In this document: positions 1-30,935 of the stretch, piece by piece
Layout of the letters: every line of letters starts with the position of its first letter
Numbering within the stretch: position 1 is the first letter of the stretch
DNA from: Adineta vaga
Lineage: Eukaryota; Animalia; Rotifera
Reading direction: 5' to 3'
NCBI GenBank assembly: GCA_021613535.1
Contig: CP075496.1
Coordinates: forward strand, 1 to 64,000
Length of the DNA stretch: 64,000 nucleotides
The notes under the pieces: model-generated
What the model was told of the DNA's origin: nothing
Seen by the model: the letters and a program-made list of their open reading frames with translations, nothing else
The model's database searches: none
Position numbers and translations under genes: made by a program

Positions 1-121
1 CCACCCACACCCACACCCACACCACACCCACACCCACACCCACACCCACACCCACCCACACCCACACACCCTCACCCACACCCTCACCCACACCCACCCA
101 CACCCACCCACCCCACACCCA
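1..121 (-). repeat. Telomeric repeat tract, C-rich strand (CCCACA)n, with variants
   Basis: Direct reading of tandem CCCACA/CACCC units; the reverse complement TGTGGG is the known bdelloid (Adineta) telomeric repeat. Confidence 0.95.
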
Positions 122-2540: not shown

Positions 2541-2708
2541 GGGTGGGTGTGTGGGTGTGGGTGTGGGTGTGGGTGTGGGTGTGGGTGTGGGTGTGGGTGT
2601 GTGTGTGTGTGTGGGTGTGGTGGGTGTGGGTGTGGGTGTGGGTGTGGGTGTGGGTGTGGGTGTGGGTGTGGGTGTGGGTGTGGGTGTGGGGTGTGGGTGT
2701 GTGTGTGT
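2541..2708 (+). repeat. Telomeric repeat tract, G-rich strand (GGGTGT)n
   Basis: ~28 units; directly abuts the hammerhead-containing retroelement 3' end at 2709. Confidence 0.97.
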
Positions 2709-2714
2709 TCCAGC

Positions 2715-2759
2715 AGCCATGACGCGTTTCGAACCCGCTACGGTTCTCATCAGATGGCT
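2715..2759 (-). ncRNA. Minimal type-I hammerhead ribozyme, intact
   Basis: Minus strand AGCCAT-CTGATGA-GAACC(gtagcg)GGTTC-GAAA-CGCGTC-ATGGCT: 6-bp stem I, 5-bp stem II, palindromic stem III, GUC cleavage triplet. Confidence 0.93.
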
Positions 2760-2930
2760 TCTAGTTCAAAAATGATCAAAATTGTATCAATTTCAACTTA
2801 AAAAAGTCAAAACTAATTCAATTTAAACATTTCTAAACCAAATACACTGTTATAAATCAAATTTCATAACAAAAAGTCATAAAATTCAACTTATAATGGT
2901 ACTTCTAGCTTGAGCAGTGTGTGTTCCAGC

Positions 2931-2976
2931 AGCCATGACGCGTTTCGACTGAATTTCACGGTTTCATCAGTTGTCA
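2931..2976 (-). ncRNA. Hammerhead ribozyme, degenerate stem I 5' arm and stem II, intact core and substrate arm
   Basis: CTGATGA-aaccgtgaaattcagtc-GAAACGCGTC-ATGGCT; 2917-2948 is identical to 2701-2732. Confidence 0.75.
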
Positions 2977-4218
2977 TAAGTCATTTTATCGGCAGAAAGA
3001 TGAATTTTAAGAAAATGTTAAAATCCGACTAATGAAATCATTCTTCAGTGGATGTTGAGTGGTATGGACTAACCTGAATGTGATTATAAATTTGGATGAT
3101 ATTTCGATAAATTATTGCGGTTGCTGTTGGAAGTTGTTTTATAACAGCCTGATGGTTTGTAGTGACTAAATGTAATCGGTAATAAGATGAATATATATAG
3201 ATTGTATTGAGAGATGCTTACTTGTTGATGAAGCTTTGTTGAATGATATGGAGAGTGAAGAAAGCTAGTGTTTTATATAGGCAGGAGAGAGCGAGAGGAA
3301 GAGGGTGGAGAACATCACGGAATTGCTATAGAAATTGTATATTTTTTATGGGAAAATTCCTGTGCCCACCATTTTATATGATCAAAGTCTGTGGAATGCT
3401 GTTTTCATGGGAGAAAATGCACTGAATAGATTCTTTTTGGGCACCAGATCAAAGTTTAACTTCGACGTGACTTAATACAGCAACGCAAATTGATCCGAAA
3501 GGAATCTGGCATTTGCTAGAAGGAATCTTTCTTTTGTCCTGACTACGTGATTTTGTCTTGTTTATGAAAGAAAGATTATAGCGTTGGTAGAGAGAAAGAG
3601 GCTAGAGGCTACTATAGATGATGTTACTTTTTTCTTTACATTTTCATTCTTCTTTTAGGTTCTGGGACAATGATTACATTTATGTTCCAAACGGTTACCA
3701 ATTTAAGATGAATTCATCTTTTGTTAATTATTAAACTATAATAATAATAAAAGCAATCTTTTCTGTTTCATTTAGAAATAAATCAATGGAACATTCTCAT
3801 ACTTACAATCATTTTATGATCAATCTATTTAAAAAAGATCAAGTTACTTCCAGAGAACAGATGGTAAAAAGTAATAGTTATGATTAGTCACAATATTGGT
3901 TAGATTATAATTTTCAATAACATATATTCAATCACTACTTATTTTTTTTTTGTTCTGGATCTTAATAGATAGGCAATATTATATTGTTTGAACATATACA
4001 TGGACAACATTAATCATTGTATTAACACTTTGTGCTGTTGTCGGTTTTGATTAATATTATGGCTTGTAAACGATTGCAAAATAGTTAACATCACATGCGT
4101 TTCATTTAATTATATTGAATTATTATTTTCTGTCAATTTAACTTTTGTATTTGGTTCATTGTATTAATGACAAGGCGAACAGCACATGCAGAATAAAATG
4201 AAGAATAGTATTTTTTCC

Positions 4219-4253
4219 TTTCGACCTTACTCAAAGGTCTCATCAGCTGTTTG
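4219..4253 (-). ncRNA. Hammerhead catalytic half (CUGAUGA-stem II-GAAA); stem III/substrate arm disrupted
   Basis: CTGATGA-GACCTT(tgagt)AAGGTC-GAAA with a perfect 6-bp stem II. Confidence 0.6.
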
Positions 4254-4427
4254 AAGTCTTAACATGATCTAAAACACTAAATTTAAACTCAAAAGTTCAG
4301 ACTATGTCTTTTCAATCACATATCAAGATATCTGTAGTGTATCGCAACTGAATTTAATTCAAATCGAAATTTGAACTAATTTCACTTAGTAATGACATTG
4401 TTATCACTTACAAAAGTCAGACAACTT

Positions 4428-4470
4428 GCCATGGTTATTTCAATTCTGCTCAAAGATCTCATCGGATGGT
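4428..4470 (-). ncRNA. Highly degenerate hammerhead relic
   Basis: ACCAT-CCGATGA-gatctttgagcagaatt-GAAA-taacc-ATGGC; lies 219 nt from the 4219 copy. Confidence 0.45.
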
Positions 4471-5041
4471 TCTATATATGATAGAATTGATCAGAATGTT
4501 TTGCTTCATTCAACATAGAATAAAACCAATTTAATTTAAAATAAAAGTAATTGAATGTAAATGAGAAGAGTTTTAGTTTATTTGAATATAAAATAAATTT
4601 GACGATCATTGAATGGAAATAATGAAGAAAATTTGAAGACATGTAAGATAATCGAAAAGTAAATCTAGAATAATCTAATAGAATAATACTAAAATATACA
4701 TATATATATATATATATATGAATTCTGGACATATGTGTTGAACAAGAGAGAATAAATGTTATCTGTAAGTAATATTCTTTTGAGAGATAAGTAAAATTAT
4801 GTACTTATAGAAAAAAAAAGAATTATTCATTAAGTATTTTTCGGACATATAGAGGCCTTGGATATACCATCATTTTAATAACAGAACATGTAACATTCCA
4901 TCGATAATCACGTAGAGATAAGGCAGACTGTATATATTTTTTTCTTTGCTTTAATTCATTTATTCTAAGAAAAGGTTTGTCTCTTATTCCTTTTTTTTGT
5001 TGCCATCATATAACGTTTCTTTATAGTTTTTACCAATTAAA

Positions 5042-5347
5042 ATGTCAACACCAGTACGACGATCTACTTTTCGTGCAAATCTACATGCCGAAGTAAATAA
5101 ATTAAAATAAACTCTTGAATATTAATTAATTTAATTTTAGTATATACCAAATTCTCCATTATCATCGCATTATGTTCAAGTTATTTGTAACAACAATGCA
5201 TCAAAATCAACTGAGGTTCCAAACTTGGTTACTGTCGAATCGAATAATGAACTTCGTCAAGTACCAGATGTTAATATTAAATGTGAAATATTTTCTGAAA
5301 AAATTGAAAAAACAAATGAAAAAAACATTGATCAATTAGCACCATAA
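5042..5347 (+). CDS. Small 2-exon ORF (85 aa, unknown), antisense to the retroelement
   Basis: ATG at 5042, exon 1 to 5092, GT..AG intron 5093-5140, open exon 2 to TAA at 5347, AATAAA at 5395; absent from the ORF track. Confidence 0.55.
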
Positions 5348-5501
5348 TATTATCTGAAAGTTTTTTTATAGTTTCAATTTTCGAACGTCATTTCAATAAA
5401 AAGAAAGTAACAATGCAAATAAAAATGTTCATTATAAAAATATCAAAAGAAAATAGAAAAATGAATCAAAAGAATTAAATAAAAGATGTAACATCTACAT
5501 A

Positions 5502-5519
5502 GGGTGTGGGTGTGGGTGT
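5502..5519 (+). repeat. Short telomeric stub (GGGTGT)x3 between Terminon units
   Basis: gggtgtgggtgtgggtgt immediately before the second 3' end. Confidence 0.9.
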
Positions 5520-5525
5520 TCCAGC

Positions 5526-5570
5526 AGCCATGACGCGTTTTGAACCCGCTACGGTTCTCATTAGATGGCT
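5526..5570 (-). ncRNA. Hammerhead ribozyme copy with two core mutations (CUAAUGA, AAAA)
   Basis: Identical to 2715-2759 except C>T at 5541 and 5562 on the plus strand. Confidence 0.85.
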
Positions 5571-6358
5571 TCTAGTCTAAAATTGATCAAAATCTAATTA
5601 ATTCTAACTTAAAAAAGTCAAAATCAACTCAATTTTATCGTTCTTAAACGAAGTTTAATGTTACCAGTGCTATAAAATAAGATGGAGTAGATAAGTTTGA
5701 TTAATTATGATGTTAGTTTGGAATTGTAGATGTTTATATGGAATTGATTGAAACAGTAGTCAGGTTGAATCGCTTTGTTGCAGAAAATGTTGATGGATAA
5801 TGTTATCAAAATGGTGGTTTTTCGGTTTGATTGGAACTTATGATGTAGTTAGTCAATGATTCATTGTAAGGGATTTATTTAATGTAATCTTACTGTCTAT
5901 ATGAGACTAGTTTATCCTTTTAGTACAATACATGTGGATTTAGTGGATTATTACTTATTCATTGTTCAATATTCGAATCTTTTGAATGGTTTTAATATTG
6001 AAAATATAGAATGAACGGTTATAAACAGGTTCTTATTCTTAATTGTGACCGGTTTTGAATCCATGGTTACGCTAGAAAATGAGATCTTCGTATAATCCAT
6101 GTATGTCTCAGGATTTTTAATATTATTAAGTCGAAAATTCAAATTAAGTTGAAATTTTATGTTTTCAGTGTTTTTCATGTATTCTATACATTTTAGTCGC
6201 GTATAAACCGAAGAAGATTTCTTATCATTGTACAGAAAGAAGAAACAGAACATTTGTTCTGGAAAAAATACCATAGGAAAGAAATAAAAGAGAGAAAAGG
6301 AATATAAAGTCCAAGAGGCAGAGAATCATTTTATTTTTTCCTCATTTATATAAAGAAA

Positions 6359-6763
6359 ATGCCTAAAGTAAGTCGACGTTCTCATCGATGTGCATGTAGT
6401 GGTGCTGCTTCAAACGGAAGCAGTGGTGATGGTGTTCACACTGAAGCACCTATCAATGCTCAATACAAGAAGGTGTGTATTGAGCATAACAAAATGGTGA
6501 TCTTGTACGAACATCGTAAAAACAATGATGGTCATGCAAGCTTTACTCGTTTACACATCAGTAAACGAGGAGCACTTGGTCCACCACCACCGCGACCACC
6601 ACGACCACCAGTAACAATTACTGGAAATAATCAACAACAGAATGGACACCGGGCAACAACCGTGGTCATTAACAATGATCATGGTGGTATAACACTCGAC
6701 GTTTCGTCGAGAAAAAACGAACATAATTCGTTGGACATCACTATCACGAATGGTGGTAGTTAA
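6359..6763 (+). CDS. Unknown 134-aa protein with a Pro-rich patch, antisense within the Terminon 3' region
   Basis: GC-richer open frame in an AT-rich context; TATAAA at 6303; basic N-terminus and PPPPRPPRPP. Confidence 0.55.
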   Translation: MPKVSRRSHRCACSGAASNGSSGDGVHTEAPINAQYKKVCIEHNKMVILYEHRKNNDGHASFTRLHISKRGALGPPPPRPPRPPVTITGNNQQQNGHRATTVVINNDHGGITLDVSSRKNEHNSLDITITNGGS

Positions 6764-7717
6764 TTTTTTTTTTGTTCTTCTTTTATTTTTGCTTGTGCGC
6801 GTGGTAGTGCCGCTTATCATTTTTGCATTAGATAGTTTTTTTTGTGGCACGTGCATGTGCTTTGTCTTCATTGAAGAATGAAGACATTCTAATTTTGTTT
6901 TTTTTTTGTTTGATTTATTTTAATCCAGCAATAAATATCTTTTTTTCTTCAATATAAATTCTTATTATTTTCAATATCATTGAATCATATAAATGAATAA
7001 ATGTTGACCATACCTTTTTAGCAGACTTAACAGTAGTAATTGAGATTATATTTTGATTATTATGATGTAAGAATAAGATATATATATATAGTTGTTGGAT
7101 ATAGACAATATGATTGTCATCTAAAAAAAAAGGAGAAAATATTTCATTTTCATTAAAATACAAAATAAATTACTCTTAATAATTGCTTGTGGACCTCAAT
7201 TATAATGAATCAGATTGATTGTCGGCTTTTTAGATTTGTTTATATTGTGTTCGAACTTCTATTAAAGCATAAAACACTGAAAAGAACGATTAATCATAAT
7301 AAAAACTATTTACTCAATAATTTTAAACATTACTTTTTGATTGGAATATTCTTTGAAAGATGGTTCAGAATCATAAAAATGGATTTCGAATGAATTAAAA
7401 TTAACTTGAAATGAAAATGACACTGTAACATAATCTATTTTCAGACAAATTCCATAAAAAATGATTAAATTCATTGAAAAATTCAATTTAATTATGTTTT
7501 AATCGAATTTAGATGATATTTTGCTGCATAATATATAGTATATTGAAGTAGTTTGTATTGTTGATCTAGAATAGAATAAAGAAATATACATTAGATTATA
7601 TTTTCGAAATCAAAAACGCCACAAGAAATGATTTATTAACAAGAAAAACATAGAAATACTATTTCCATTGCATGAATAAATAGGATTAAATGAGAAAAGC
7701 ATTAGTAATTTGTTCTA

Positions 7718-10700
7718 TCAATGTTTAGTTGATGAAAATTTCAAACGTTTGATTTTCATCTGTTTGTTCAATAGCATATATTGTTTTGGACGTTTATGAA
7801 TCAACTCTTGCTTACCATCTCGACGATTTCGATTGCCAACAACCATTCTAACTGCCATTGCCGGTGTATTCTGGAATACGTTTCGGTATAATTGATGCAT
7901 ATCTCTTTTGAACGAAGGAAATCGTTTTTCATGTGTATAATGAATAAAGAAGCGATCTTGCAAATGCATTACATTTTCACGCTTTGTAACTGTTGAATCA
8001 TCTGGTTGTTCATCATTTGCATCAGCTGAAGCTATACTTTTGGTCACTTGTGTTTGACGAATCGTGGGTTGAGCCAACATTTTCTGACGTAATAGGCAAA
8101 GTTGTGTCGTATCTGTGATAAGTGACGAAAAAGAGTTGATATTGATATATTCGAGCATATATTTATAGAATTTATCATTAATAAATGATGAAGAATAACT
8201 AAAATAGATTTTTCTGATGTAATTTCATTGATTTTGTTCTAATAAGGAACGAAATGCTTACCCATTATACAATAACATGAGTTTTATTTCTTTTTGTTCA
8301 CAATGAAATGCCTCCAATGTTGATGAATATCGAATAGCTCGTGCCAAGGCAGTTTGGATAACGTTTTGGTATACATATGGATGATGATCGGATGTAAATG
8401 GTACCACATATGGTTCTGCACTTGGTTTATGATAAACTGATGTTAAAAGAACACCATCACTATTTGTTAGAACTATATCTAGAAATGGAAGACTTTGACT
8501 AATTTTATAATCTAATTTAATATTTGGATGCCATTGATTTGCTTCATCTAATAGTTTTCTTAACTGTTGTTCAGATTTATTCCATGTCATGAAAACATCA
8601 TCAATATATCTATAAGAATTATAATTAATGTTTCTATATTCTATGATATTTACCTGCCAAAGAATTCACTAGTAATATCTTGATAACGAACCAATTCCTT
8701 CTGCCATTTCCACATAAATATATTAGCTAATGTTAAAGTAAATGAAGAACCCATTGCACCACCTGTTGTTTGCTTATAGATTTTGTTGCCATAGACAAAT
8801 ACATTTTCTTTAATTACTATCGAGGCCAGTTTCCGAATGGTATCAAGTGCAATTCCTTTCACTTTTCGATAACCATGGACATAAAGAAATTCTACCAGAG
8901 TATTCAATGCTTCTTCCTGTGGTAACATAGTATATAAATTATGAATATCAAAAGTACAGAATAAAGTTGATGGTTTAAAAATGTCGGTTCTGATATATCT
9001 ATTGATTCGTTTGATTAAATGGGCACCATCGATAATAGTGGTAGTATAACAATGTTTATCAAATATAGGACGAATAATCTTATCAAGAAAATCTGATATT
9101 TTTGTTGTTGGAGCACGAATTGTATTTTCAATCGGTCGAACTGGTATATTATTCTAAATACAAAGAAGATGTAATTATAATTATTCCGAGATAGCTATTA
9201 CTACACCTTATGTGTTTTAGGATTGAAATATAAATGAGCTAATTCACATTTGGTTCGATTAGGCATCATTTGTTCATATTGCCATTTTAAAACGAGTTTT
9301 TTTGAATAAAAAGTGTTAAGTAATTGAATAACTTTATTTAAAATTTCATTGAATGGATTCTCTGTTAATTCTATGAAGGCATTTGTATCAGAAAAGAACT
9401 TTTGACCTTTCTTTTCAAATTCACTTGCTAAACCAATATAGAAATTATGACCTTTATCAGTAAGACGTATAACAAGATGATTTTGTTGAATCTTCTTTCG
9501 GATAGATGCAACAGTTTGTGCTTGTTTATGTGCTTCGATACGATCTTTATATGGTATAGATGAAAAATAACATTGTTGAAGATAATCAAGAAGTTGATCA
9601 GAATATTCTTGAAAAATAGACACTGTTCTTGGTATACGACAAAGTTTGACTAGATAATCTTGAACTTTAGTAAAAATATCGTTATGTTCATTTTTAATTA
9701 TAGTTTCTTGTTGTTTTCGAGAACAAAGTGCACTTTGATTTAGTCGAATAAATGATGGACCTATAACAATTTGATTAATTCTAGTCAATGTCAAATCTCA
9801 CTGAATGCAACAAATTCTACCTAGTTTTAGATAACTCCATTCAAGTGTAGTAAATGGATTCGACATTAAATCGAGATATGGTTCAGGTGAAACACCAATC
9901 ATATTCTTTGCTACAGATGAACGTTGACGATTACGACGCAGTTTTCTTCGATATAATGGCATTCTATTCAAAATATCTTGTTTTAATTGACTGGTACGAT
10001 ACGTCATATACCGGTTAATATCATTTACAATATTACCATTTGCTGTATATGTAGCAGTTGATGCGACTGATGTTAATTCTTCTAATATTTGTTGATATTG
10101 ACAATCATATTCTTGTAATTTAACTTCATAGCTGGTTAAAAATAGATGTAACCATTGACGTTTTGCTTCCTGAATGATTTGTAATCGTTCATTTTTCAAT
10201 CGAATATTTCTTTGTTCATTATTCATGGTTATAGGCATAATAGGTGAAATAAAATTTTCCAAATGATCAAAATTGGGTGGTAAAAATTGACAGATGATTC
10301 GCATTTCTAGCATTAATTGTTCTTCCCATACTTCTACTTGTCGTTGTCTTATTGTAATTAATTGATCTAGGATAACAGCAACTGGAGAATGAACAATTAT
10401 AGTTTCATATAAGTTTTTCTGTTCCATATCAACCTTAAATTTAATTATTTGATTTTGATTTCTTTTCGATAAATATTTTCGTTCGAAATCAACATATTCT
10501 TTCAAACAACGATCAATTCGATCAAAGGATATTGGCAGAATTGGACATAAGGTAGATTGTTCATATAATTTAATAGCATACTGTTCCATCATGCTTTTTA
10601 AGTGTGCTATATAATTGATAAGATACTCTTGGCATATAACAAAATCGTTACTTTTTGCTATCAGATACAATTGTTTCTTTTTGTTTAAATATAAAAGAAA

Positions 10701-11423
10701 GAAAAATAATAAGAAATTATCATGAATCAAATGCGTAACTTACTGGCCATTGATGTTGTTCACGTCCAATATTTAAATATAATTCCCATAATTCTATATC
10801 AGCTTTCAAACAATAATACCGATCCAATAGATCTAAGCGTCGATGAATAAATATTTGTAGATCTTTTTGCTTTACAGAATAATTTAACTTTTTGCTTAAC
10901 ATTTGAAAAAGTATTATAGGTGACCGTTTCAGATACATTGGTCTTCTATAAATAGAAATAAGTATATATGTTATGAATAAATAATAAATAAATATATAAA
11001 TATAAACCGATATTTCATATTGGTCGAAGGAATATTCTCCCTGATCATATGCATTTCTGCTGTGGATTTCCTATTGTCTATTTTCTTCTTTGTTGATTGA
11101 GCAACTGACGATGAACTAGTTGATTTTGATATTGCTGAAACCGAAGTTATTTCTTGTAATGATATATCTCGTTTCCTTTTATTTAAATTTGTTGGTATTG
11201 TTGTTATGGTATCAAAAACAATACCATTCATAATATCTTGGATATAATCATTCATTCGATTATTTTGACTATTGATTTGTCTTCGTTCATTGATTAATTT
11301 TTCAATTCTAGATGATTTCATTCCACGTTTACGACATTTTCTTCGAAAGCATTGATTTTTTCGATTACCATGACATTTCTTTCGTCGTCGTCGTCGTCGT
11401 CGTCGTTCATTAGTAGTATCCAT
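7718..11423 (-). CDS. Athena (Penelope-like) reverse transcriptase with N-terminal basic/coiled-coil region, 7 exons, ~1118 aa, apparently intact
   Basis: Exons 11423-11008, 10945-10744, 10676-9821, 9760-9207, 9153-8654, 8609-8262 and 8198-7718 splice in phase (the 10677 acceptor is the least certain); motifs DKG, YFNPKTHK, RPI, FCTFDIHNLYT, GGAMGS, RYIDD, LPFLD, YHKP; no C-terminal endonuclease. Confidence 0.92.
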
Positions 11424-11577
11424 TTGTAGACTTTTGTTAGTATGGTTTAATAAATCTGAAATAAATGAAAAATCGATAAAATTTTGTTTAGAATAGAAAT
11501 ATGAATATATGAATGATAGAATAGTTTGAAAGAAGAAACAAATTAGAAATAGTTTTTGTATAATCAATCTCATCGTT

Positions 11578-12861
11578 TTACATATAGTTGAATTGGTTGC
11601 TGAAGATGAATTCATGTTTTAGTTTGTGGTTCAGGATAAAGTTGGCATATTTGACCATGTGTAATCGACGAGCTTCAATTGCTTTTAATGCAGCTTTATT
11701 ATGTTTAATTTCGGATCTAGTAGGATCTTCCTTTGGTGAACCTATGTCTTGCTGATATTGAATTGTTTCTGCTAATTTGCTCTTCTGTTTATGATTTTCT
11801 TCGATTTCTTTGAAGATAATATCTCTTTTGAGAGTTTGCAATCGGTTCATTTCGTCTGAGATAACGTCACTAGCTATTTCATTGACTGTTACATCATCTT
11901 GTGTACGTTTTATAAAGTAATCGATGTCATTTAATGTACGATGGATCGAATTAGGTGACAAACATGGTTGTAATGAATTAAGACGATATTGCAACAAAGC
12001 CGTTTCTCCTGCTATTTTCACTTGTGTAATTGTCATATCCCAAATACGTTCAGCTGCACGGGTCTAAAATCAAATCAAATCAAATTAAATTAAATACATA
12101 GAAACATGAAATACAATAAAGTTTATAGATAAATGTCTTACATATGTACTTTTTCGTTTTATCTTGAGAAACTGTTGAAGTAATTCATGATCGGTAACAT
12201 CCAACTTTAAGCAGGCCTGTTTGAATTCAAATTCATCTCGTAATATTTTTTGTTTTTCTTCAACAAATGTAAGAATAGTAATGAAAATTCTGTATCTGTA
12301 ATAATCTACGTCGTTGTCACCTTCATAATCCGGAAACTTTGCATATTCGAAATCATCAATTGCATTTCTACCCTTTTCTTCATAGTATTGGATTCGTGCG
12401 AGATATTTTTCAATAGCTGCTTTAGATCGACCATATGTTTGACAAATTGAGTACTTCTTTGCCAGATATTTTGTTACTTGACCATTCCAAATATTTTCCA
12501 TTTTACCAAGATGATAATAATATTCCCAATGTTTTCTTTGTAGTTTCAGAAAAGAAAAGTGATCCAGTAATTTTGTATATTGACGAATACATTTTATTTT
12601 CTCGTCTTCATATACACGCCAATCAGTAGATTCATGTTTATCAAAAGCATCGAATATTAAGTCCAAGAATACTGAATCAGGTATTGAATCATAGTTATAG
12701 AAGTAGTCCATGATTATCGAAGGTATTGACGTAGAATCATTTGATTTGCTTTTCTTTTTCTTTGTTTTGTTGACTAATGTTGATGAATCGACGATAATTT
12801 CACTTACATATGACGAAGTCGACTCGTGATCATCTTGAAACGAAGCGTCGTTTATATTCAT
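11578..12861 (-). CDS. Stand-alone coiled-coil ORF (Athena ORF1-like), 2 exons
   Basis: ATG at 12861, intron 12064-12141; helical; shares W..Y..LG...W and E..LL..R features with the other CC ORFs. Confidence 0.7.
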
Positions 12862-12940
12862 TTGTAATGATAATAAGAATGAGAACAATTTTCAAGTTTA
12901 TCTGAAATAGATGGAAAAATTTTTAAAGAAAAAGTAATTC

Positions 12941-16800: not shown

Positions 16801-16955
16801 GTGTGTTAATCTAGAATAGATGAAATATGAAGAACTTCTTCTTTTCACTGATACATGCATAATTTCAGAAATGGTTAACTGATTCAATAAAATAAGAAAA
16901 CTGAAAAGAAAAAAAAAAGCATAGAACGAAAGTTTGATTAAAGTTATATAAATAA

Positions 16956-18950: not shown

Positions 18951-19079
18951 AATTGTTTGATTCAATTACAAAATCTACAATTGCAAACAAAAATTAGAAA
19001 GAGAAAAGTGAATCAATTGAATTTAGATGAAAACTTTAAAATAAAAAGCATGCAAACAAACGAGCAAAAAGCAAAATCT

Positions 19080-21017: not shown

Positions 21018-22435
21018 CATACTTTAAGATCATAGAGAGTTTGAAGACGTTCATCAATATTTTTAAAACGTTGTTTCATAATATGGCACATTTGTTCAGT
21101 AAGTTTTCCATCGGCTAAATAAGCACGTTGTCGTTGTTCAAATTGTTTATATTCCATATCAAATCTTTGTGTATACTCTTCCATTTTAGCTTCAGCTGTT
21201 CGAATATGAATTACTAACATGTCAGATTTCGTTCGTTCTAATAATTGTTCATAACGATAGATTAAACGTTGTCGAACATCTTTATCTTGAACCGTTGTTA
21301 ATGTTAATGGTGCTGGTATTCGAACAGTATGAAATAAATCAGAATAATGCTGATGAGCAACACGTTGTTTCAATAGAGCAACTTCCATTGTAGCCGTTTC
21401 TTTATTTAATTTACTTTGAGAAAGATTTTCAAATATTTTAAGCTAGAATTAAGAAAAAGAAAGAGATATCTAGTTAGTAGGAGAAAGAAAAAGTATCGAA
21501 CTTACTTGATCAGCATAGTAAGTTTCATGATGAAAATCAGATACAAACAATCCATCATAATAATCATATTTAATTATTGCAATTTGACTTTCAATGAATA
21601 TTTGATGTAATGCGATTCCATATTCTTGAACATAATTTTTGATTGTTTCATTTATTTCTGATGTAAAACGATAATTCAATTTTACTTTGCAATCATTTAG
21701 TTGACTTTCAAGAGTTCGAGATTGTTTTCGTAGATCAGTCAATTTTTGTGAAACATAATTAGAACATGTTTCATAAGTTATTTGATTGATTTGAGTACTG
21801 TTGTGGTTAGGATCGGCCAATATAATTGATTTCAATTTTTCTGGCCAAATACGAAGTGGTGTCCGTGTCGTTGTATGAAGTATTGTAGACATAGATATTT
21901 GCCATACAGATGGTTCAGTATTAATCAATTGACCTGTACCTGAATGTAAATAAGTTTTCCAAAGTGAAACATGTAAATTGAGTAATGCCAATTGATGTTC
22001 AAGATATGCAACTTGTCGTAAATCTTCTATTGTTAAATTACTTGTATTTGCTTGAAGATATGGATGCATAATTTGTTCAAATGTTTTACTATCATTTAAT
22101 AAATAATCAGGCATTTCATCTGTTGTTGATATGGGTTGAATCAAGTCACTTTTTAATTTTTTCATAATTGATGTTGGTGATGAAGGTGTTAATAATGGAC
22201 GTTTTGTTGTTGTTGTTGCTGTCGTTTGTTCATTTGAAGGCGATAGTTGATTTAATTTCTGTGATAAATGTTGTTCAGTATCATTATTGTCATTATCATC
22301 ATCATCACGATTGTTAGAATTTTTACTAGGATTGGTAAAGTGTTCTAAAAAATCAATATCTAGATCATCTTTTTCATCCAAATCATCACCATAATCATGA
22401 AAGATATCATCGAAACGATTTAATTCGCCTGACAT
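20978..22435 (-). CDS. Coiled-coil ORF B (Athena ORF1-like), 2 exons
   Basis: In-phase intron 21443-21505; ends FFVNAPT overlapping RT-B in the -1 frame. Confidence 0.8.
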
Positions 22436-22661
22436 TTCTTTGTCGAAGTGTTAATTAAAATCTAGAATAAAAAAGAAAGATCAAATGAAAAGAATAACAA
22501 ATAATTTTCTTGATTAAAATGATATATAAGTTGATTATATTTTACTTTGAAAAGAAAAGATTAGAAAAAAAACATGCACAGAAGGTAGAAGCAAGAATCT
22601 AAATAAAAAACAAAACAAAGGATAAGTAATGATTGAGAATAAGATGTTCGAAAACTTACAT

Positions 22662-24696
22662 TTAAGCTTGATTATTGAAATGTTGTTGAACCAAAAGAGT
22701 ATATGATGAATAGCAATGTTTCGAATTTAAAATAATTTTAAAGCCATTTACTTTCACTTTAGGATCTTGATTAATAATTTCAGACCAGAGCTTATGAAAT
22801 TGTGCATTGAATCGGCAACGATTGCCCCAATCATACAAATAATATAAAGAAATCAATCGATGATTTCGAATGAGTTGTTTTTCTTCATCTCGAACCGTTT
22901 TTTGTTGTTGTACATAGCGAAGTAATTGTTGTCGAAGACCTATGAACTGATCTTGATTTAAATGAACATTCGTTTGATTGGTAATTGTATATCGTTTGAA
23001 AAATTTGCGTAGATGATATTCAACAAAATCCAATGAATAACCATTGGCAAGAAATGTTAATTCAATGTATTGTCGTTCTTGTTGAAAATCTTCTAAATGA
23101 GTACAATATTGACCAGCACGTTGTAGAGCATAATGAAACCACTGTCGATGTATTAATCGTGGATGATCATAAGCATAGGGTAATAAAAATAATTGTTTCA
23201 TTGGATCATGATAGACATTTGTGTATAATTGACCATTTTGATTTTCAATATAAGCATTTAAAAAATAAGCACTTTTACCAATAGTTGTTTTTAATTTCAG
23301 TTCAGTTGGTAAAGAAATTTTGATTTTATTGATTACATGTTGTAGTTTTTCTTTTGTACCATTCCAAGTAAAGAAACCCATATTATGATAACGTGCATAG
23401 AATTCGGTTCCAAGACGAATATCTCGAATCAATCGAATTTGCCAACGATGCATATAAATACTACCTAAGACTTCTGCGAATGATAAATTCAATGGACATC
23501 CTTGAAGATATTTATGAAGTTTTTTCTCATAAATAAAATAATTATTTTGTAAAACGATTTTTGCTAATTCTTCAATTGTATCGACTGTAAATTGAGCAAA
23601 TCGACCAGTCAATGTTTGACTGCGTAAGAATTGATTTAAAGCCAATAATAAACTTGAATGGGCAATTTGAGAATAAAGATCAGGAACTTCAAATGTAACA
23701 AAATATGTATTTGCTGTTAGATGATTTGCTTGTTTACAAAAATAAGCCAGTTTTTGTATAAAATCACTACCATCATTCATAACTGTTGCTTGACAACTAC
23801 TTTCTAGCATTGGTCGAATATATTCATCCAGATACATAGATAATGCATAGATTGGACTTTGACGACATGATGAAAGTCTTGCTTGTAATAAAGAGATATC
23901 ACCATTCTAAGTAGAGAAGAAGCAAAATGGAAAGTTAATTTAGGAAAAATAACATTACTTGATTCATTTCTGGTAGAAAATACATGTATGGTAATTCGAA
24001 ATTTGTTTTTTTACCAAGACGAAATTTTTCGAAATATTCTTCTGTAATCATTTTATTTTTATATAATTTTTCGAAATTAGAATCAATTGATTTGATAATT
24101 TCATTGAGTTGTTGTTCTTTTGTAGAATTAATTTCATCGATAACACATAATAATTTATAACGTTTTGAATTTTGAATATAATATTCAGCTAAGTTGTAAA
24201 AATCTTGTGTTGAACCAAGATAATATGTATTATAATCATCTTGGGTTCGTTGTAAGATTAATTGATCCTGTCGAATTTGTTTTTGTATTGATTCAATTAA
24301 TTGTCGTTCGTACAATGTACGTTCTTTAACAGATGATGGTAATGGTACAGAAAATGATTCCAAGAATTCTTTTTCAATCATTTGATTAAAATTCATTTGT
24401 CTTGAAATATCAATTGAATGTTTTTTAAAAACTTTTGCTAATTGATGTCGTAATGATGTCATTTGTTTGAAGACGATTTGATTTAACATTGAATCAGTTG
24501 GAATTAAATGCATTTGACCTGGTGATACATATGTTGGACCACGTTGAAGAAATTGTAATTGTTCATCAGATAAATGATGTTTGGCATTTTGAAACATTGT
24601 TGGTGAATAGAACAGAAAGGATGATTTGTGATTAGAAATAATGCTCCGACGGTGAATCAAATCTAATTCATATCCGTCGGAGCTTTGACGAAAAAA
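22662..24696 (-). CDS. Catalytically dead Athena RT homolog A, 2 exons, reached by -1 frameshift
   Basis: Intron 23907-23958; motif A FVTFEVPDLY; YIDD replaced by YHNM; clearly paralogous to RT-B. Confidence 0.85.
24643..24696 (-). promoter_or_regulatory. -1 programmed ribosomal frameshift signal A
   Basis: Slippery T_TTT_TTC, 6-nt spacer, 10-bp hairpin GCTCCGACGG/CCGTCGGAGC plus an inner TGAAT/ATTCA stem. Confidence 0.85.
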
Positions 24697-26217
24697 CGTA
24701 ATTGTATTTTGTAAATCGTTAAAATCCGTTGACTTTGATTTGTAAAACAACGATTCATAATATCACACATGGTTTTTGTTAATTTTTTATATGTTGGACC
24801 ATGTACTTGATCAGCTTTAAATTGTGCCATATCATTATTAAATTTCTTTTCAGTTTCATTCATCTGTACTTCCATAGTAGCCAGTTGAACAGACGTCATA
24901 TCAGATATCGTTCGTTGCAAAATTTTATCATATCGTTCAATTAATCGTAAACGCATATGTTCATCTGTAATAGCATCCAATGCTTCTGGTCTCGGTAAAT
25001 CAAATGTTCTAATATTATCTGGTAAATAATTATGAACAATACGTTGTTTTAACATAGCTACATCCATTTTTGTTGTTTCTTTTGCTAAATGAGCTTGTAA
25101 CAGATTTTGAAATGTATTGATCTGTAGAAGAAAAACAGAACTTATAAATACTAATATAAGAAATTGATAACATACATGATCTTGAAATGGATTTTCTCGT
25201 TTAAATTCCCATTCCAATGCATGATCAGTATAATGAAATTGAATTCGAGCTATTTCTTGTTCAATTCGAAGACGATGTCAAACAATACCATGTTGTTCAA
25301 CAAATTGATCAATTGTTTTTTCCATTTCCGAAGTAAAATGTGGATGAATCGTTTGTTTCAAGTGTTCTAATTGACCTTGATAATGTGTTTGTTGGATTTG
25401 TAATTGTTCCAATTTTTTATGCACATAACTTAAACATGCTCGGAGATCGACTGTTTCCATGTCAGCCGAAGTAGTACTAAGACGTTCTTCTTCAACCATA
25501 CGCATTTTTACTTCTTTTGGCCAAAGAGGAAGATGAGTTTGTGATTCTACCTGTTTTTGATTGACTTTCAAGTGACCCATACCAGATTGTAAATAAATTG
25601 TCCAGAGTGTTTGATTGAGATCAACTAATGCTAATTTATGTTTTAAAATAGCAATTGATCGCAATGTTTCCATTGGTAAATTAATGCCTGATTGTTCAAT
25701 AATAGGAACAATAAAACGTTCAAAAAATTTACTCTTCAATGATAGATATTGCGGTGCATCATCCACTGGTTGTTCTATTACCACTTTTAATTTTTTTGGT
25801 GCTGTTGCTGCTCGTGTTGGTGTTGATGGTGTTAATACTGGTCGTTTTGTTCCACTCGCTTGTACTTGTTGTTGTTGTTGTTTGTTGTTGTGATGCTGAT
25901 AATTGACGAAATTGTTGTGATAAACGTCCTTCTTCTTGTGGAATAGTTGTAGAAGCAGCAGCAGCAACAGGAATTGTTTCATCCAATTCATTGGATTCCA
26001 ATTGTACTGGAATAATTTGTTCGTTTCGACCAAAATTCATAAAATGATAATCAAAATCAACAGGTTGATCTTCATTTTCATCAGCATCATCATTTTGACC
26101 ATGATAAATATCAAGAAATCGATTGATTTCACTACCACCCTATAACAATGCAGAAATACAAATGAATTAAAAGTATATTAAGAGAAAAAAACATACTTTT
26201 TTATTTGAACCAGCCAT
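24663..26217 (-). pseudogene. Coiled-coil ORF A, 3 exons, with a +1 indel (~25882) and an in-frame TGA (25278-25280) in this copy
   Basis: Introns 26140-26196 and 25122-25175; colinear with CC-B across both lesions. Confidence 0.75.
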
Positions 26218-26339
26218 TGTGAACAAAGAGAAAAATAATCTAGTATTAATTATATCTGAAAAAAACAAATAAACAACTAAGAATGAAAATATAAGTGAAA
26301 TAAAATAAAAAAGCAAAACAAAAACTCATATTACAAATA

Positions 26340-27335
26340 CTAGTGTATTAATGGTGAGCGAACTAAAAAGAGAAAGACAAAGAAACGTACAGCAAAAAGA
26401 AAATTGAAGTGTGAACTTACAAGATATGATGGTCCAATGATTGAAGCTAATTTAGTTGTTGCAAAACAATCATTCGTGGCATAATTGATTAATTTTAATC
26501 GTTCTTGATTTTCTTTTTCTGTTAATGATGATTTCATCAGACGAATATCCAAGCCAATTCCCCAATTACTGACTGTAAGAGATTTATCCAAAAATTCTTC
26601 CAGAACATTGGCTACAGCTCTTTGTAAAGCCCATGGGTTATTCTGTTGTTTGTAAGGTCGATGAGAACATGTACAGCTTGGATCATCTTCTTTGTCTTTG
26701 ACTATGGCCATAGAACAGTAGGAATCATGTGGATATGTATCATTGTACCAATATTTGAATTCATCTTGTACATTAATGATTTCTAACTGATGTAATGGTA
26801 TGCATTTAAATAAGGGATAGATATTAAATTTGATTAACTCTTTTTTTTCATTTCCCCATGCAAATAATGTTTTCGATGGATGAAATATGGTGTTGATTAG
26901 CCGTTGGATTTGTAAATAAATTGGTGATTTGATTGATGGCATATGAAACATTTCAAATACAATAATATGTTTCTTTTGTTCATTTTTGTCACTTTCTACT
27001 AGAGATGACACAAATTCTACTTGTATTAAAGCTGGTTGTTTTGAAAAGTCATCAATTTCTGTGTCCACAGTAAAATAAGCTGTTCGATGAGCCAATTCCC
27101 GTAATCGAATAAGACCAAAGAAAAACGACATCGAATTAATAAATATAAGTTCATATGTTTGTTTATATGAAAAGATTGGTAATTGACGACTTAATTCTTC
27201 ATTGAGTTGACTTTTTTTCTTATTATGATTCCATTGTCGTTTTCGTTGTTGTAAAGTTTTCGATTTTTTCTTCGAGCTTTGTAGAACATCAAGTAATGAC
27301 ATGAGGACAATTTCATCATTAATTAATGTAGCCAT
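26340..27335 (-). CDS. DEDDy 3'-5' exonuclease (RNase D/WRN-like)
   Basis: ExoI motif FTVDTE, ExoIII motif YATND, FAWG; the true C-terminus is probably cut at the GTAAGT donor at 26420. Confidence 0.82.
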   Translation of the reverse strand: MATLINDEIVLMSLLDVLQSSKKKSKTLQQRKRQWNHNKKKSQLNEELSRQLPIFSYKQTYELIFINSMSFFFGLIRLRELAHRTAYFTVDTEIDDFSKQPALIQVEFVSSLVESDKNEQKKHIIVFEMFHMPSIKSPIYLQIQRLINTIFHPSKTLFAWGNEKKELIKFNIYPLFKCIPLHQLEIINVQDEFKYWYNDTYPHDSYCSMAIVKDKEDDPSCTCSHRPYKQQNNPWALQRAVANVLEEFLDKSLTVSNWGIGLDIRLMKSSLTEKENQERLKLINYATNDCFATTKLASIIGPSYLVSSHFNFLFAVRFFVFLFLVRSPLIH

Positions 27336-27535
27336 TTGATTGATAAAGTAGAAAATTCGAGTTTAGAGTAAGATTTGTGAAATAATCTAGAATAAAAAGC
27401 GAGAAAGAAAAATGATAATATAAGATTCAAATGAACTGATTATATGAGATATGAGATATAGTTGAAATGAAAACATGCATGTATGAATAAAAATGAAAGT
27501 TCGATGAGTTCTGTAAATGTTGATTGATATCTTCT

Positions 27536-28162
27536 CTAGGCGGACATGTAGCCATGGTTAATTCTGGTAATTTCACCTTCCAATGATTGTAATGATGATT
27601 GTAATGGTGTTTTGGGTTGGCGTTGTTGTTTAATAGACGATTTTCGGTTTGATGGTGTTACTGATTGTTGTTGTTGTTGCTGTTGTTGTGCACGATTAAT
27701 GATTCGCTGGCAAAAACATGAAATGAGCCAATCACATAGATTAAAGCCACTTCGAAAGACGCAAAAATAGACAAATATACCAATAAACGATGTGATGGTA
27801 AATATAGCAACAATGTCTCGCCAACTTGAAAGGATTGGACCAGTTTTTGTATGATGATCGTTGATAGCATCAGCAACAAATGTAGCATTGATTGAGTTGT
27901 TGATGAGATAATTGATCATTGTTCGATGATCATTGATGGTTGTTTGTAATGCATGTATATTAAGATTACCTGCATCTGTATTCCGTTTTTGTCGATGCTG
28001 ATGAGTTATATTTTCGAATATAGGTACACAAGGTGTTTGTTTTAACAGAATGATTATTTGTTGTAGAGTCATTGTATGTGAACATGTAAAGACTTGACTG
28101 GTTAGCTGACAATTGACCAAACCCATAATAAGACATAAACCAATATAATGAATACTAATCAT
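27536..28162 (-). CDS. Small type-I membrane protein: signal peptide, RQKR site, heptad-like segment, TM helix
   Basis: Hydrophobic N-terminus, RQKR at aa ~57-60, TM IVAIFTITSFIGIFVYFCVF, Cys-rich juxtamembrane tail. Confidence 0.75.
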   Translation of the reverse strand: MISIHYIGLCLIMGLVNCQLTSQVFTCSHTMTLQQIIILLKQTPCVPIFENITHQHRQKRNTDAGNLNIHALQTTINDHRTMINYLINNSINATFVADAINDHHTKTGPILSSWRDIVAIFTITSFIGIFVYFCVFRSGFNLCDWLISCFCQRIINRAQQQQQQQQSVTPSNRKSSIKQQRQPKTPLQSSLQSLEGEITRINHGYMSA

Positions 28163-28298
28163 TCTGAACTAAATTTGCTTTGTGTAATTGCTTGAGGGTG
28201 ATGAAAACGATCGATATATCTAAAATAGTAAAACAAATAGGAAGAATAGATAAAATAGAATAAAATAGCAAATGAAAAGAAAAATATATTAAGAAGAA

Positions 28299-29927
28299 TT
28301 AGTTATCTTGAGGATGGCATAGATTTTCACACCAAACACCTTGATTTACAGGAGTTCGAAGAGGATATTTGAAAATATGACCTAATTTATTCAGTTTTGC
28401 TTCAGTATGTGTAACAAATAACGAATGAACAATTTGACGAAATGTTTCCGATGAATTCGATGGTAAAACAGCAATCATTGTTGCTGTATAAACATTATAT
28501 CGAATATCATTAAAATTTTCATGTAATTTATATTGAAAGAATTCATATTGTTGATGAAGTTGTTGTTTAGTAAATTTAAAACCTTGTGTTGGTGGTGGTA
28601 CATTATTAACTAGTTGTTGTATGTGTTTATCATACTTTTGATGTTCAGTTGTTCCTAATTGATATTGTTGATTTGCTTGATGAGCGAGTGCATTTGATAC
28701 TGGAACAAATATCCAATAACTGTCGTTAACATCCAGAAATGATTGGATTGCACTTGAACAACGTTTTGGATGTTGATACAGACGACAAGAATCTTTTTTC
28801 GTCATATTCAATGTTCTCTTACCAAAGCATTTTTCATAATTTGCCGAACCCATTAACTGTTCAATGATAAGTCGATGAGTAATGGCATGATGAGTTGCTA
28901 AACGTTGCCATAATAGACCACTAGTTTCTCCAATAAAATCATATTCACCACAATGGCATGTCAAAGTATAAATTATATTTTTTGTATTACATGTAGCTGG
29001 GCAATTTAAAATTGATTCATATCCATTAACAAAACGATGTTTTTGATAACTATTAAATTGTACATCATATTTTTGTTGTTTTTTTCTTGGACTACATGAT
29101 GAACATATTTCGCAGGCTATTTGATTGCACCGTTTCATAACATAACGACATTCAGGCATTTCTGAACAGAAAATTCCTTCAGTTTGTGATCGAGGTTGTG
29201 CTTGACGAAATGAACATGTTTTCATATAAAATAAATCGACATCAATTTGTAAATAAAATTCAATTAATTGTTTAAACTCACTATCATTTAAAGTAAGAAT
29301 AATATTAGATGAACGGAATTCTTGTAGAATACGAACATATGCATTTTCACATAATTGAATAACTTTTTTTAATCTTGAATAACTATAATCCAAAAGAGTA
29401 AAACCAATATTGAATCGTTCCATTATGTCTGGTCCATAATATTTATGATAAAAATCTGCTAAATGTGATGCTGTAATAGTAGATGGTTTTTCGATGGGAA
29501 TAGAACATACAATTTTATCTGGATGTCGTCGTGCAACTTCTTTTTCAGATAAGTGTTGTACTGGAACACTGGATAATAATAAAAATACTGTTCGATCAGA
29601 TTCAGAATCGAAAGCCATATCATCATCAACAACAACATTGATATGTTGATTAGATATTTGATCTGACGGTGGATAAATAGGTAAAATTGTTAATCGTTCT
29701 TGATTACATGCTTCCAATGTAAATGGTTGATAAGATGGTTGTGCTAAACCAATGGGTGATGGATTTGCATTGATCATTGATGTAGTTGAATGAGTAGTAG
29801 TAGTAGCAGCAGCAGCAGCAGCAGCAGCATTAAGACAATGTGCATTATCATTATCATCTGATGATGAAGATAATTCGATCAGATCGATTGTACGCTTAGA
29901 AGGATTAGGGCGATGTGAATGTGCCAT
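28299..29927 (-). CDS. GIY-YIG-like endonuclease, copy 1, intronless, 542 aa
   Basis: CPATCNTKNIIYTLTCHCGEYDFIGET...QRLATH, CxxxxCxxC, KLN. Confidence 0.85.
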   Translation of the reverse strand: MAHSHRPNPSKRTIDLIELSSSSDDNDNAHCLNAAAAAAAATTTTHSTTSMINANPSPIGLAQPSYQPFTLEACNQERLTILPIYPPSDQISNQHINVVVDDDMAFDSESDRTVFLLLSSVPVQHLSEKEVARRHPDKIVCSIPIEKPSTITASHLADFYHKYYGPDIMERFNIGFTLLDYSYSRLKKVIQLCENAYVRILQEFRSSNIILTLNDSEFKQLIEFYLQIDVDLFYMKTCSFRQAQPRSQTEGIFCSEMPECRYVMKRCNQIACEICSSCSPRKKQQKYDVQFNSYQKHRFVNGYESILNCPATCNTKNIIYTLTCHCGEYDFIGETSGLLWQRLATHHAITHRLIIEQLMGSANYEKCFGKRTLNMTKKDSCRLYQHPKRCSSAIQSFLDVNDSYWIFVPVSNALAHQANQQYQLGTTEHQKYDKHIQQLVNNVPPPTQGFKFTKQQLHQQYEFFQYKLHENFNDIRYNVYTATMIAVLPSNSSETFRQIVHSLFVTHTEAKLNKLGHIFKYPLRTPVNQGVWCENLCHPQDN

Positions 29928-30029
29928 TGTTATAAGAAAATGTATATCTACAATAAAAATAAAAGAGCATTATAAATTTGACGAATTAAAATAAACACAA
30001 AAAGAAAAAGAAAAAGAAAAAATTGATCA

Positions 30030-30518
30030 TTATTTATCCTCATCCGAAAGATAATGTACATCTTCGACTATATGAGTTGATGTGTGTATATGTGAAGTTT
30101 TAAGCCTTTTACATGTTATATCACTGAGATAACTTTGTTCGTAAGATCGTTTTGATTCGTTAACCACTGTAATTTCTTGTTCACAGTCGACATCATTGAC
30201 GACTTTGATTAGCGATTCAAATAAATCATTTTGAAGAATTCGTTGAAAATATTGAGGCGGAATACAGATGCTATGCTTGGCCAAGATTCTTTGAATTCGA
30301 TCGTTTCTTTCAGTTTCATTTTCAATTGTTAATATAATATCACCAAGTAAGCCACTTCTTGCCATTCGCTTTCGATAAGCATGTGGAATGAACACATTTT
30401 TTAAATGGGACAGACGCTTGAGTTGTTTTCTTTCATTATATTCTTCTTCTAAAAAATCTTCTATTGTCGATGCAGTTTCAATTGAATCGATTGATGGAGA
30501 TGAAGATAAACTTGTCAT
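30030..30518 (-). CDS. Unknown 162-aa protein, first cistron of the array
   Basis: Open frame with good ATG context, ~80 nt downstream of a TATA box. Confidence 0.6.
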   Translation of the reverse strand: MTSLSSSPSIDSIETASTIEDFLEEEYNERKQLKRLSHLKNVFIPHAYRKRMARSGLLGDIILTIENETERNDRIQRILAKHSICIPPQYFQRILQNDLFESLIKVVNDVDCEQEITVVNESKRSYEQSYLSDITCKRLKTSHIHTSTHIVEDVHYLSDEDK

Positions 30519-30559
30519 TGTTGTATAGAAGTAACACCAGTATAGTTGATATAATTTTG

Positions 30560-30935
30560 TTGAAATGGTATATAGACAATGAAAAAACTCAGGCTTTATA
30601 TAGGCTGAGAAGAGAGAGAGAGGAATGCAACTTTAATTGCGCATTTTATTAAGGGGAAATTCCATTGGCTTCTGATTTCAGTTGCTAAAGTCCATAGAAT
30701 GTTCTTTTTCTTTAGGGAGTGCTATATTTTGCACCCCCTTTTCTACAAAAGATCATAGTCCAAATCGAATGTGAGAAAATGCAACGACGTAAATCAACCA
30801 GATCCAGTTTATTTTTAGAGTGGGAGTCTGTTTTTTCTCTCTAGAATATTCTAGAGAGAGAATTAGAGAATTAGAGAATCAGAGATTCAGAGAGGGTATA
30901 TAAACGGTAGTTTTTATACAATCCTTTTCATTTTC
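30560..30935. promoter_or_regulatory. Putative divergent promoter pair
   Basis: TATATAAA on the minus strand at 30602-30595 and on the plus strand at 30897-30904 (TCATT ~33 nt downstream); short AGAGAATY repeats between them. Confidence 0.5.

Follow-up and report, generated by a model that had tools for sequence, protein, structure and literature searches.

The first 64 kb of chromosome CP075496.1 of the bdelloid rotifer Adineta vaga (15.2 Mb; assembly AV20, GCA_021613535.1) were analyzed, and this whole 64,000-nt stretch is referred to below as the window, with window coordinates identical to those of the record. We found that the left end of the chromosome very probably carries a chain of two head-to-tail Terminon-type retroelements, which are endonuclease-deficient Penelope-like elements (PLEs) of the Athena kind. 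Read on the minus strand, the chain consists of a 167-bp telomere tract (2541-2707), a non-coding and 5'-truncated unit B of 2.8 kb (2709-5501), an 18-bp telomere stub (5502-5519), and a unit C of approximately 25 kb (5520 to ~30600). An initial annotation of this DNA had proposed the same succession of telomere, hammerhead, truncated unit, telomere stub, hammerhead, and ~25-kb unit, and the motif counts and minus-strand reading showed this layout to be real. Terminons have been defined in the literature and described in A. vaga, with units of up to 40 kb (PMC6431247, section 8), and are reported to carry DEDDy exonuclease, GIY-YIG-like, coiled-coil (CC), transmembrane (TM), GDSL, and Rep open reading frames (ORFs) in varying sets (PMC6431247). 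The class, its host, and its cargo are already published, and at the class level the finding is already known.

The features by which Terminons are recognized were found throughout the chain. The hexamer GGGTGT was matched 29 times in the window where 0 matches were expected by chance, and plus-strand (GGGTGT)n at 2541-2707 and 5502-5519 directly precedes antisense 3' ends, as in Terminon attachment. Hammerhead motifs run directly into (ACACCC)n at 2709 (and 2925), 5520, and also at 63601, as at Terminon junctions, and the truncation typical of the class was observed in unit B, which is cut at 5501, capped by (GGGTGT)3, and followed by unit C. Unit C itself has the characteristics of a giant unit, with 13-15 ORFs on one strand that include DEDDy, GIY-YIG-like, CC, and TM genes; a GDSL or Rep ORF was not found in unit C. 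Together with the bdelloid host, all Terminon features open to testing here were present, and the class call stands as supported. The initial annotation had made this call, which is upheld by the hammerheads with their reverse-complement repeats, the G-rich attachment, the stub truncation, the 3' reverse transcriptase (RT) lacking an endonuclease, and the co-oriented cargo. Its description of the unit as unusually rich is unsupported because published Terminon units of up to 40 kb carry the same ORF types, and its figure of 11 cistrons was an undercount.

The hammerheads were examined next to the telomere repeats. A 21-nt sequence corresponding to the 3' half of the motif was matched exactly at 2709, 2925, and 5520 (0 expected), and on the minus strand the motif reads as helix I, CUGAUGA, helix II, GAAAC, the palindromic ACGCGU, the cleavage triplet, and ACAC(CC) repeats. 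Minimal type-I hammerhead cores were identified at 2709-2765 and 63601-63663, and dimer folds via the ACGCGU palindrome were favored by 6-10 kcal/mol. These motifs fit the PLE-type minimal hammerheads, among them variants without helix III, that were described in PMC7761336. The two hammerheads of unit B (a and b) are identical over their 3' 32 nt. It was noted that a pair of hammerheads approximately 215-230 nt apart, with a homologous spacer, recurs at 63601-63880 and that the homology continues beyond it. Because the unit starting at 63601 has a matching pair, a matching spacer, and further homology, 2709-5501 is probably a single truncated unit whose two hammerheads form a tandem pair about 215 nt apart, and not two units with a separate junction at 2925. 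Tandem hammerhead pairs are usual for PLEs. The Terminon-type 3' end at 63599-64000 (minus strand; GGGTGTGT) has an intact hammerhead at 63601-63663 and a second near 63830-63880, and runs off the window; it is ~70% identical to the unit B 3' end over ~275 nt, with a mean column identity of 78% in a 431-column alignment.

Unit B contains no ORF of at least 80 aa on its sense (minus) strand. Resemblance to the unit C 3' end is confined to the final ~145 nt of unit B (83.5% identity), and homology between the body of unit B and the unit C 3' untranslated region (UTR) was rejected, as the similarity ends ~145 nt from the end. An editing bias from G to A as the source of the changes in the unit C hammerhead was also rejected, with 8 G>A against 7 A>G among 32 differences. 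Separately, an internal hammerhead-like core was observed in unit B at 4215-4265 (minus strand; CUGAUGAG), with a 6-bp helix II and GAAAG, with neither adjoining telomere repeats nor a convincing helix I.

Analysis of stop-to-stop ORFs and their all-against-all comparison revealed a minus strand packed with ORFs from 30632 down to 7721. The approximately 13-15 ORFs of unit C (13 if each frameshift fusion is counted once) are co-oriented and intron-bearing, in the 5'-to-3' order O1, GIY1, TM, DEDDy, CC1, RT1, CC2, RT2, O18/GIY2, GIY3, CC3, O12, O11b, O11, and O10-RT3. Three GIY-YIG-like genes, CC ORFs, a DEDDy exonuclease, and a TM protein, all named in the initial annotation, were located in unit C. 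Short GT-AG introns (44-69 nt) account for many of the apparent ORF breaks, and the 63-nt intron of CC2 agrees with the NCBI model; exons were searched, aligned, and placed individually by reference. The TM and CC assignments were taken from crude hydropathy and heptad scans. Pfam searches of 30 stop-to-stop ORF pieces returned nothing at E < 0.01, only two sub-threshold and chance-like matches. Upstream of O1, the TATA box at 30590-30598 is likely the promoter and the approximate 5' limit of unit C. Unit C looks like a single transcription unit with its TATA box at ~30598, which would yield a single transcript.

Three RT-like genes are present in unit C, as the initial annotation had stated for its RT-fold proteins; the catalytic aspartates are missing in two of them. 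The RT at the 3' end, O10-RT3, carries PLE-type motifs and an intact YIDD, retains the motif A Asp and the motif C DD, and groups with active bdelloid RTs, as a putative member of the Athena clade. Its RYIDD spans an intron, the RT motifs are intact across the exons, and likely short GT-AG introns were placed at 9811-9761, 9206-9154, 8653-8610, and 8261-8214. The RT3 exons are 65-76% identical to bdelloid proteins, including P0052 and P0053, that have RYIDD and PF00078. The O10 and RT parts are continuous in the bdelloid contig L002; this and the other L numbers used below denote other bdelloid or metagenome contigs that hold related loci. RT3 is the only RT of unit C with an intact catalytic center and is predicted to be active.

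RT1 and RT2 are approximately 30% identical to RT3 in the all-against-all comparison and would not be catalytically competent: motif A carries E, and xDD is replaced by HNMG or HQKG. The same loss was seen in 53 homologues from Adineta steineri, A. ricciae, Rotaria species, and metagenomes, which are mostly intact ORFs of ~600-625 aa. An exhaustive search produced 130 representatives at E <= 1e-30. Dead RTs number at least 98 representatives at 50% clustering, and D...DD was kept in 7 of the 113 rows scored (109 database RT cores and four window pieces). The tree had 107 rows; it was built without six rows whose motif columns were broken and with the active P0052 and P0053 included. Here 9 active and 98 dead rows were split by a single branch with a support of 99 in the SH-like approximate likelihood-ratio test (SH-aLRT), in an unrooted tree with sampling centered on a dead query, and RT1 and RT2 fell in different dead subclades. 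Because the homologues across genera are mostly intact ORFs with the same catalytic loss, we assign RT1 and RT2 from their sequences to a dead-RT clade that is old and conserved, and do not regard them as decayed copies. It was noted that RT1 (22665-24762) and RT2 (19083-21023) have no gene models on the record for the chromosome, while their neighbors do, and an exact-product look-up with RT2 returned no entry; they were probably left out through repeat masking.

Each dead RT overlaps the CC ORF that precedes it and is read in the -1 frame with respect to that ORF. Both overlaps contain the components of a -1 frameshift site, with a heptamer in the 0 frame, a spacer, a stable structure, and a -1 ORF downstream. 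The cassette was encountered at every CC/dead-RT junction, including those in L002 (~8381), L006 (~2672), L007 (~9914), and L008 (~3531), with further examples in L012, L014-L021, and L023-L025, and its fold z-scores range from -3.6 to -6.6. Nine distinct versions, taken from the window and from eight further lineages, share an identical slippery site and identical arms on both sides of the stem, while their loops vary in sequence and length and protein identity is only ~45-55%. The stems offer no covariation to count; selection on the RNA is argued because both stem arms are without synonymous change. These features suggest that the dead RTs are probably made as gag-pol-like CC-RT fusions via -1 ribosomal frameshifting, and they may act as RNA-binding or particle-forming pseudo-enzymes. 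The broader proposal, that Terminons of this lineage have a conserved, selected, and ancient clade of dead RTs translated as -1 fusions with CC ORFs, is put forward tentatively, as a possibility that we would not yet favor. Dead-RT paralogues and the cassette were not mentioned in the Terminon and PLE literature searched, which excepts the primary Terminon paper, where they may be described.

The order of genes in unit C was compared with that of the related loci. The order O1-GIY-TM-DEDDy-DEDDy-CC-deadRT was found in L007, three groups of metagenome contigs (L014-18, L022-27, and L029) carry (TM)-CC-deadRT-GIY2-GIY3, and L002 carries CC-deadRT-CC3-O11/O10-RT3; gene order varies in other loci, for example in L008. 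Because these blocks recur and no telomere stub or hammerhead core was detected between 5577 and 30600, the evidence favors a single composite unit rather than a fusion of three elements, short of proof. It appears improbable that the 25 kb are instead three older Athena-type elements stacked head to tail, with eroded junctions and two decayed RTs. Such a stack would explain the three paralogous CC-CC-RT modules and the differing gene order of related loci, and members of this class occur as a rule in chains of units with truncated 5' ends (PMC6431247). However, the dead RTs are intact members of an old clade, with 45-60% identity across three genera and the same substitutions at catalytic positions; only ~120-215 nt separate RT1 and RT2 from the genes that follow them, and these gaps show no remnant of a hammerhead, telomere repeat, or 3' UTR; and in unrelated contigs dead-RT modules precede other modules in the same order.

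Two observations were made on the related contigs. In L002, a (TCACCC)2 stub at 2205-2216 separates two RT-like ORFs in a related element of another bdelloid and may be a unit junction without a recognizable hammerhead. In the metagenome contig L026, the deadRT-GIY2-GIY3 block begins inside the RT, at residue 106, and the flanks (1-10000 and 16106-19856) gave no match to window ORFs, no telomere repeat, and no hammerhead.

Host genes can be trapped between Terminon units, and the ORFs upstream of RT3 could in principle be host or domesticated genes beside a short Athena element. The spliceosomal-type introns, the annotation of several of these ORFs as ordinary A. vaga genes, and the single exact copy on record would all agree with that origin, which we nevertheless hold to be very improbable. 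The ORFs are co-oriented, tightly packed, and paralogous to each other and to RT. In every bdelloid genome sampled, homologues of these ORFs occur in multiple copies spread over many contigs, and RT-like ORFs always adjoin them. The DEDDy, GIY-YIG, CC, and TM types are published Terminon cargo, and PLEs retain introns, as Arkhipova et al. reportedly described in 2003.

The DEDDy ORF belongs to a family in which the ExoI DTE and ExoIII Y-x3-D motifs are conserved. Its AlphaFold (AF2) model had a predicted local distance difference test (pLDDT) score of 77, and the top Foldseek matches were the Nibbler, RNase D, RRP6, and WRN exonucleases, with E from 1e-5; this modeled structure confirmed an RNase D/WRN-type exonuclease fold. 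PF01612 was touched by 4 of 11 DEDDy homologues and the window copy had no Pfam match. Single-sequence phmmer searches of DEDDy, GIY1, and an RT3 exon against the PDB, and a DEDDy profile search against the PDB, returned nothing meaningful. In GIY1, F replaces the second Y of GIY-YIG, and the order of secondary structures fits the beta-beta-alpha ... beta-alpha core. PF01541 was matched by 13 of 30 GIY-YIG homologues (best E 3.9e-5), with no Pfam match for the window copy, and a fold search with the whole GIY1 protein gave nothing better than E 2.6. For nucleases of Terminons, 'large unique insertions' have been reported (PMC8557442), with which this outcome is in agreement. A homologue of the TM protein, 59% identical, was found at the equivalent position in L007.

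From these observations a mechanism may be proposed. A minimal type-I hammerhead fold and, after it, (ACACCC)n would form the end of the element RNA, the repeats would pair with the G-rich telomeric 3' overhang to prime synthesis, and the element's own RT, O10-RT3, would extend the chromosomal 3' end by copying the RNA. No endonuclease cut would be needed because O10-RT3 extends the chromosomal 3' end. Unit B would have been added first and left 5'-truncated, three telomere repeats would have capped it, and the ~25-kb unit C would have followed. Unit C has three modules, each combining CC ORFs with an RT-like gene. The last RT alone is predicted to be catalytic, the upstream RTs having lost their motif A and motif C aspartates, and the genes of the unit keep their short introns. 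The DEDDy exonuclease, the three GIY-YIG-like proteins, and the membrane protein would be accessory.

Several observations weigh against this picture. No foreign locus covers the whole 25-kb order or extends as far as a telomere end or hammerhead, and exact-protein look-ups found the products of O1, TM, and GIY1 on record, in A. vaga, only on this chromosome. Unit C has no telomere stub at its 5' end, and its boundary at ~30600 is set by the TATA box and the last homologous ORF. In the unit C hammerhead, two core positions are altered that have proved essential in the hammerheads studied so far, and mutational studies are reported to show that changes there abolish cleavage. Both the proposed frameshifting and the role assigned to the dead RTs are deductions only. 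The Rfam hammerhead models gave no match at the gathering threshold in the whole window, nor at E <= 10 within 2400-6000; this miss is expected because of the hammerhead variants without helix III (PMC7761336). Finally, the polarity of the chain contradicts the terminal telomere at 1-120, and either a rearrangement or an assembly error must be assumed.

The terminal tract (1-120) and the chain tract (2541-2707) have opposite polarity and lie 2.4 kb apart. The G-rich tracts of the chain lie on the plus strand, so that it was built rightward, whereas the chromosome ends on the left with a C-rich tract. The initial annotation had stated that the chain extends the G-rich strand; this part is retained, but the G-rich tract is an interstitial one and faces away from base 1, where the chromosome really ends. 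The reversed polarity fits a ~30-kb subterminal inversion, the joining of telomere-capped fragments, or a misassembly. In the AV20 assembly, (TGTGGG)n was reported at every scaffold end, and the subtelomeres are rearranged, rich in transposable elements, and hold most of the rearrangements and uncollapsed haplotigs (PMC8494291). Further telomere relics were observed near 43.8, 47.5, and 63.2 kb. Those at 47523-47599 and 63151-63231 are head-to-head, each with a short G-rich tract followed 17-30 nt on by a C-rich tract, and look like scars of the end-to-end joining of capped fragments.

An inverted chain with both telomere polarities within 2.7 kb could also be an assembly artefact of a repeat-rich end. 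The C-rich tract at 1-120 opposite the G-rich tract at 2541-2707, the head-to-head relics at 47.5 and 63.2 kb, and the concentration of rearrangements and uncollapsed haplotigs in the subtelomeres of this assembly (PMC8494291) would all be compatible with that explanation, which is unlikely in our assessment. The elements, junctions, and ORFs are internally coherent, and the stub and hammerhead junctions are biological signatures that no assembler would create. Interstitial telomere repeats and neotelomeres have been documented in A. vaga (PMC8494291, PMC13564844), and an artefact would alter the context of the elements and not their identity. A biological origin of the reversed polarity is plausible because of the head-to-head relics at 47.5 and 63.2 kb together with the reported neotelomeres with Athena fragments (PMC13564844). 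In its present state, the chain is a relic that is interstitial, directed away from the current terminal telomere, and carries a unit C hammerhead with two core mutations.

The chain was further compared with known systems. At the level of class and by published description, it resembles the A. vaga Terminons (Arkhipova, Yushenova, and Rodriguez, 2017; reviewed in PMC6431247) in host, putative Athena-type RT at the 3' end, hammerhead and repeats, G-rich attachment, stub truncation, chain formation, cargo, and size; no class-level difference was noted, and unit C is without a GDSL or Rep ORF. In Athena (~6 kb as first cloned), the 3' module from CC3 to O10-RT3, the 3' UTR, the hammerhead, and the repeats are alike and introns are kept, whereas such a module makes up only the 3' third of the 25-kb unit C. 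The canonical PLEs (Penelope, Poseidon, and Neptune) share the RT motifs, the minimal type-I, tandem, and dimer-capable hammerheads, and the GIY-YIG type with CxxC and CCHH-like motifs. They differ in having the endonuclease fused to the RT in a single ORF, internal chromosomal insertion, and pseudo-LTRs (long terminal repeats, LTRs), whereas unit C has three stand-alone GIY-YIG genes and an RT without an endonuclease.

Like the chain in the mechanism proposed above, the Drosophila elements HeT-A, TART, and TAHRE form head-to-tail arrays that are added to chromosome ends by end-primed reverse transcription, with 3' ends towards the centromere. Those elements differ as non-LTR elements of the LINE (long interspersed nuclear element) type with poly(A) tails and no hammerhead, which replace telomerase repeats rather than pair with them. 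The frameshift cassette resembles that of retroviral and LTR-element gag-pol genes in its X XXY YYZ heptamer, 6-nt spacer, stable stem-loop, and overlap of structural and polymerase-like frames. Here, however, the downstream 'pol' is a dead RT of a Penelope-like element, and the active RT does not lie behind a cassette.

Other features of the neighborhood were also recorded. A 241-aa ORF at 951-1676 (plus strand) lies between two telomere tracts, has no Pfam match, and contains an SHGKGxxDGxGG-like motif that we presume to be that of uncharacterized transposon-like proteins. A remnant of a hAT-type DNA transposon was found at 39784-42432 (minus strand); it contains a weak BED finger besides a hAT dimerization domain (E 2e-20). 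The ORFs at 48380-53922 (plus strand), which encode EGF-like and LDL-receptor class A domains, are host-type genes between telomere relics. The coordinates of the chain and of its genes are collected in the table.

Table. Coordinates of telomere tracts, hammerheads, genes, and frameshift cassettes in the chain (window positions; aa, amino acids).
Feature	Position	Strand	Remarks
Terminal telomere, (CCCACA)n with variants	1..120	+	C-rich, chromosome end; polarity opposite to chain
Interstitial G-rich tract (GGGTGT)n, unit B attachment site	2541..2707	+	167 bp
Unit B, 5'-truncated 3' part of related Terminon	2709..5501	-	non-coding
Unit B hammerhead a	2709..2765	-	intact CUGAUGA and GAAA core, 5-bp helix II, 6-bp helix I
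Unit B hammerhead b	2925..2985	-	upstream member of tandem pair; core present, weaker helices
Telomere stub (GGGTGT)3	5502..5519	+	18 bp, separates unit B (at its truncated 5' end) from unit C (at its 3' end)
Unit C hammerhead	5520..5576	-	fold kept; two G-to-A core changes (CUAAUGA; CAAAAC)
Unit C 3' UTR	5577..7720	-	2.1 kb
O10-RT3, putative Athena-type RT with long N-terminal extension	7721..10739	-	PKTHK, PVRPI, FDIHNLY, RYIDD; without endonuclease domain
O12, O11b, O11	10974..12891	-	O11 with basic R/K run; homologues in L002
CC3, third copy of coiled-coil-like ORF pair	12944..14040	-	crude heptad scan, all-against-all comparison
GIY3, ~4 exons	14813..17016	-	YIGET; Arg lost, Glu to Asp
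O18 and GIY2, several exons	16959..18965	-	FVGQT; conserved Arg lost
RT2, intact 646-aa ORF, predicted dead	19083..21023	-	motif A E for D; motif C RYHQKG
Cassette in CC2/RT2 overlap	20967..21017	-	U UUU UUC, 6-nt spacer, 10-bp stem, 18-nt loop; z = -4.9
CC2, coiled-coil-like	20981..22435	-	NCBI model 464 aa, 63-nt intron 21505-21443
RT1, predicted dead	22665..24762	-	motif A E; motif C RYHNMG; one 52-nt intron 23958-23907
Cassette in CC1/RT1 overlap	24643..24696	-	same slippery site and stem arms, 21-nt loop; z = -6.6
CC1, coiled-coil-like	24666..26217	-	NCBI model 428 aa
DEDDy 3'-5' exonuclease, I4U23_017156	26343..27335	-	DTE and Y-x3-D motifs, fold
TM protein	27539..28162	-	N-terminal hydrophobic segment (signal peptide), TM at residues 115-138, poly-Q tail
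GIY1, intact, 542 aa	28302 (28299 in exact-product look-up)..29927	-	CxxC linker; IIY, FIGET, R, H, THTE, KLN
O1, first ORF, 162 aa	30033..30518	-	homologue upstream of GIY in L007
TATA box (TATATAAAG), likely promoter	30590..30598	-	~75 nt upstream of O1 ATG at 30518; by-eye reading

These results mainly confirm published work, and the locus shows the Terminon class clearly in a chromosome-level assembly. Unit C illustrates how repeated coiled-coil and RT modules may make up a giant retroelement in which the final module alone is predicted to be enzymatically alive, and the reversed polarity with the neighboring head-to-head relics would record the breaking, capping, and rejoining of bdelloid chromosome ends. 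The dead RTs and their invariant cassette offer a testable handle on Terminon expression and packaging. If the proposed fusions are true and previously unreported, giant PLEs would carry gag-pol-like pseudo-polymerase modules beside a single working RT, and these modules would probably serve RNA packaging or particle assembly.

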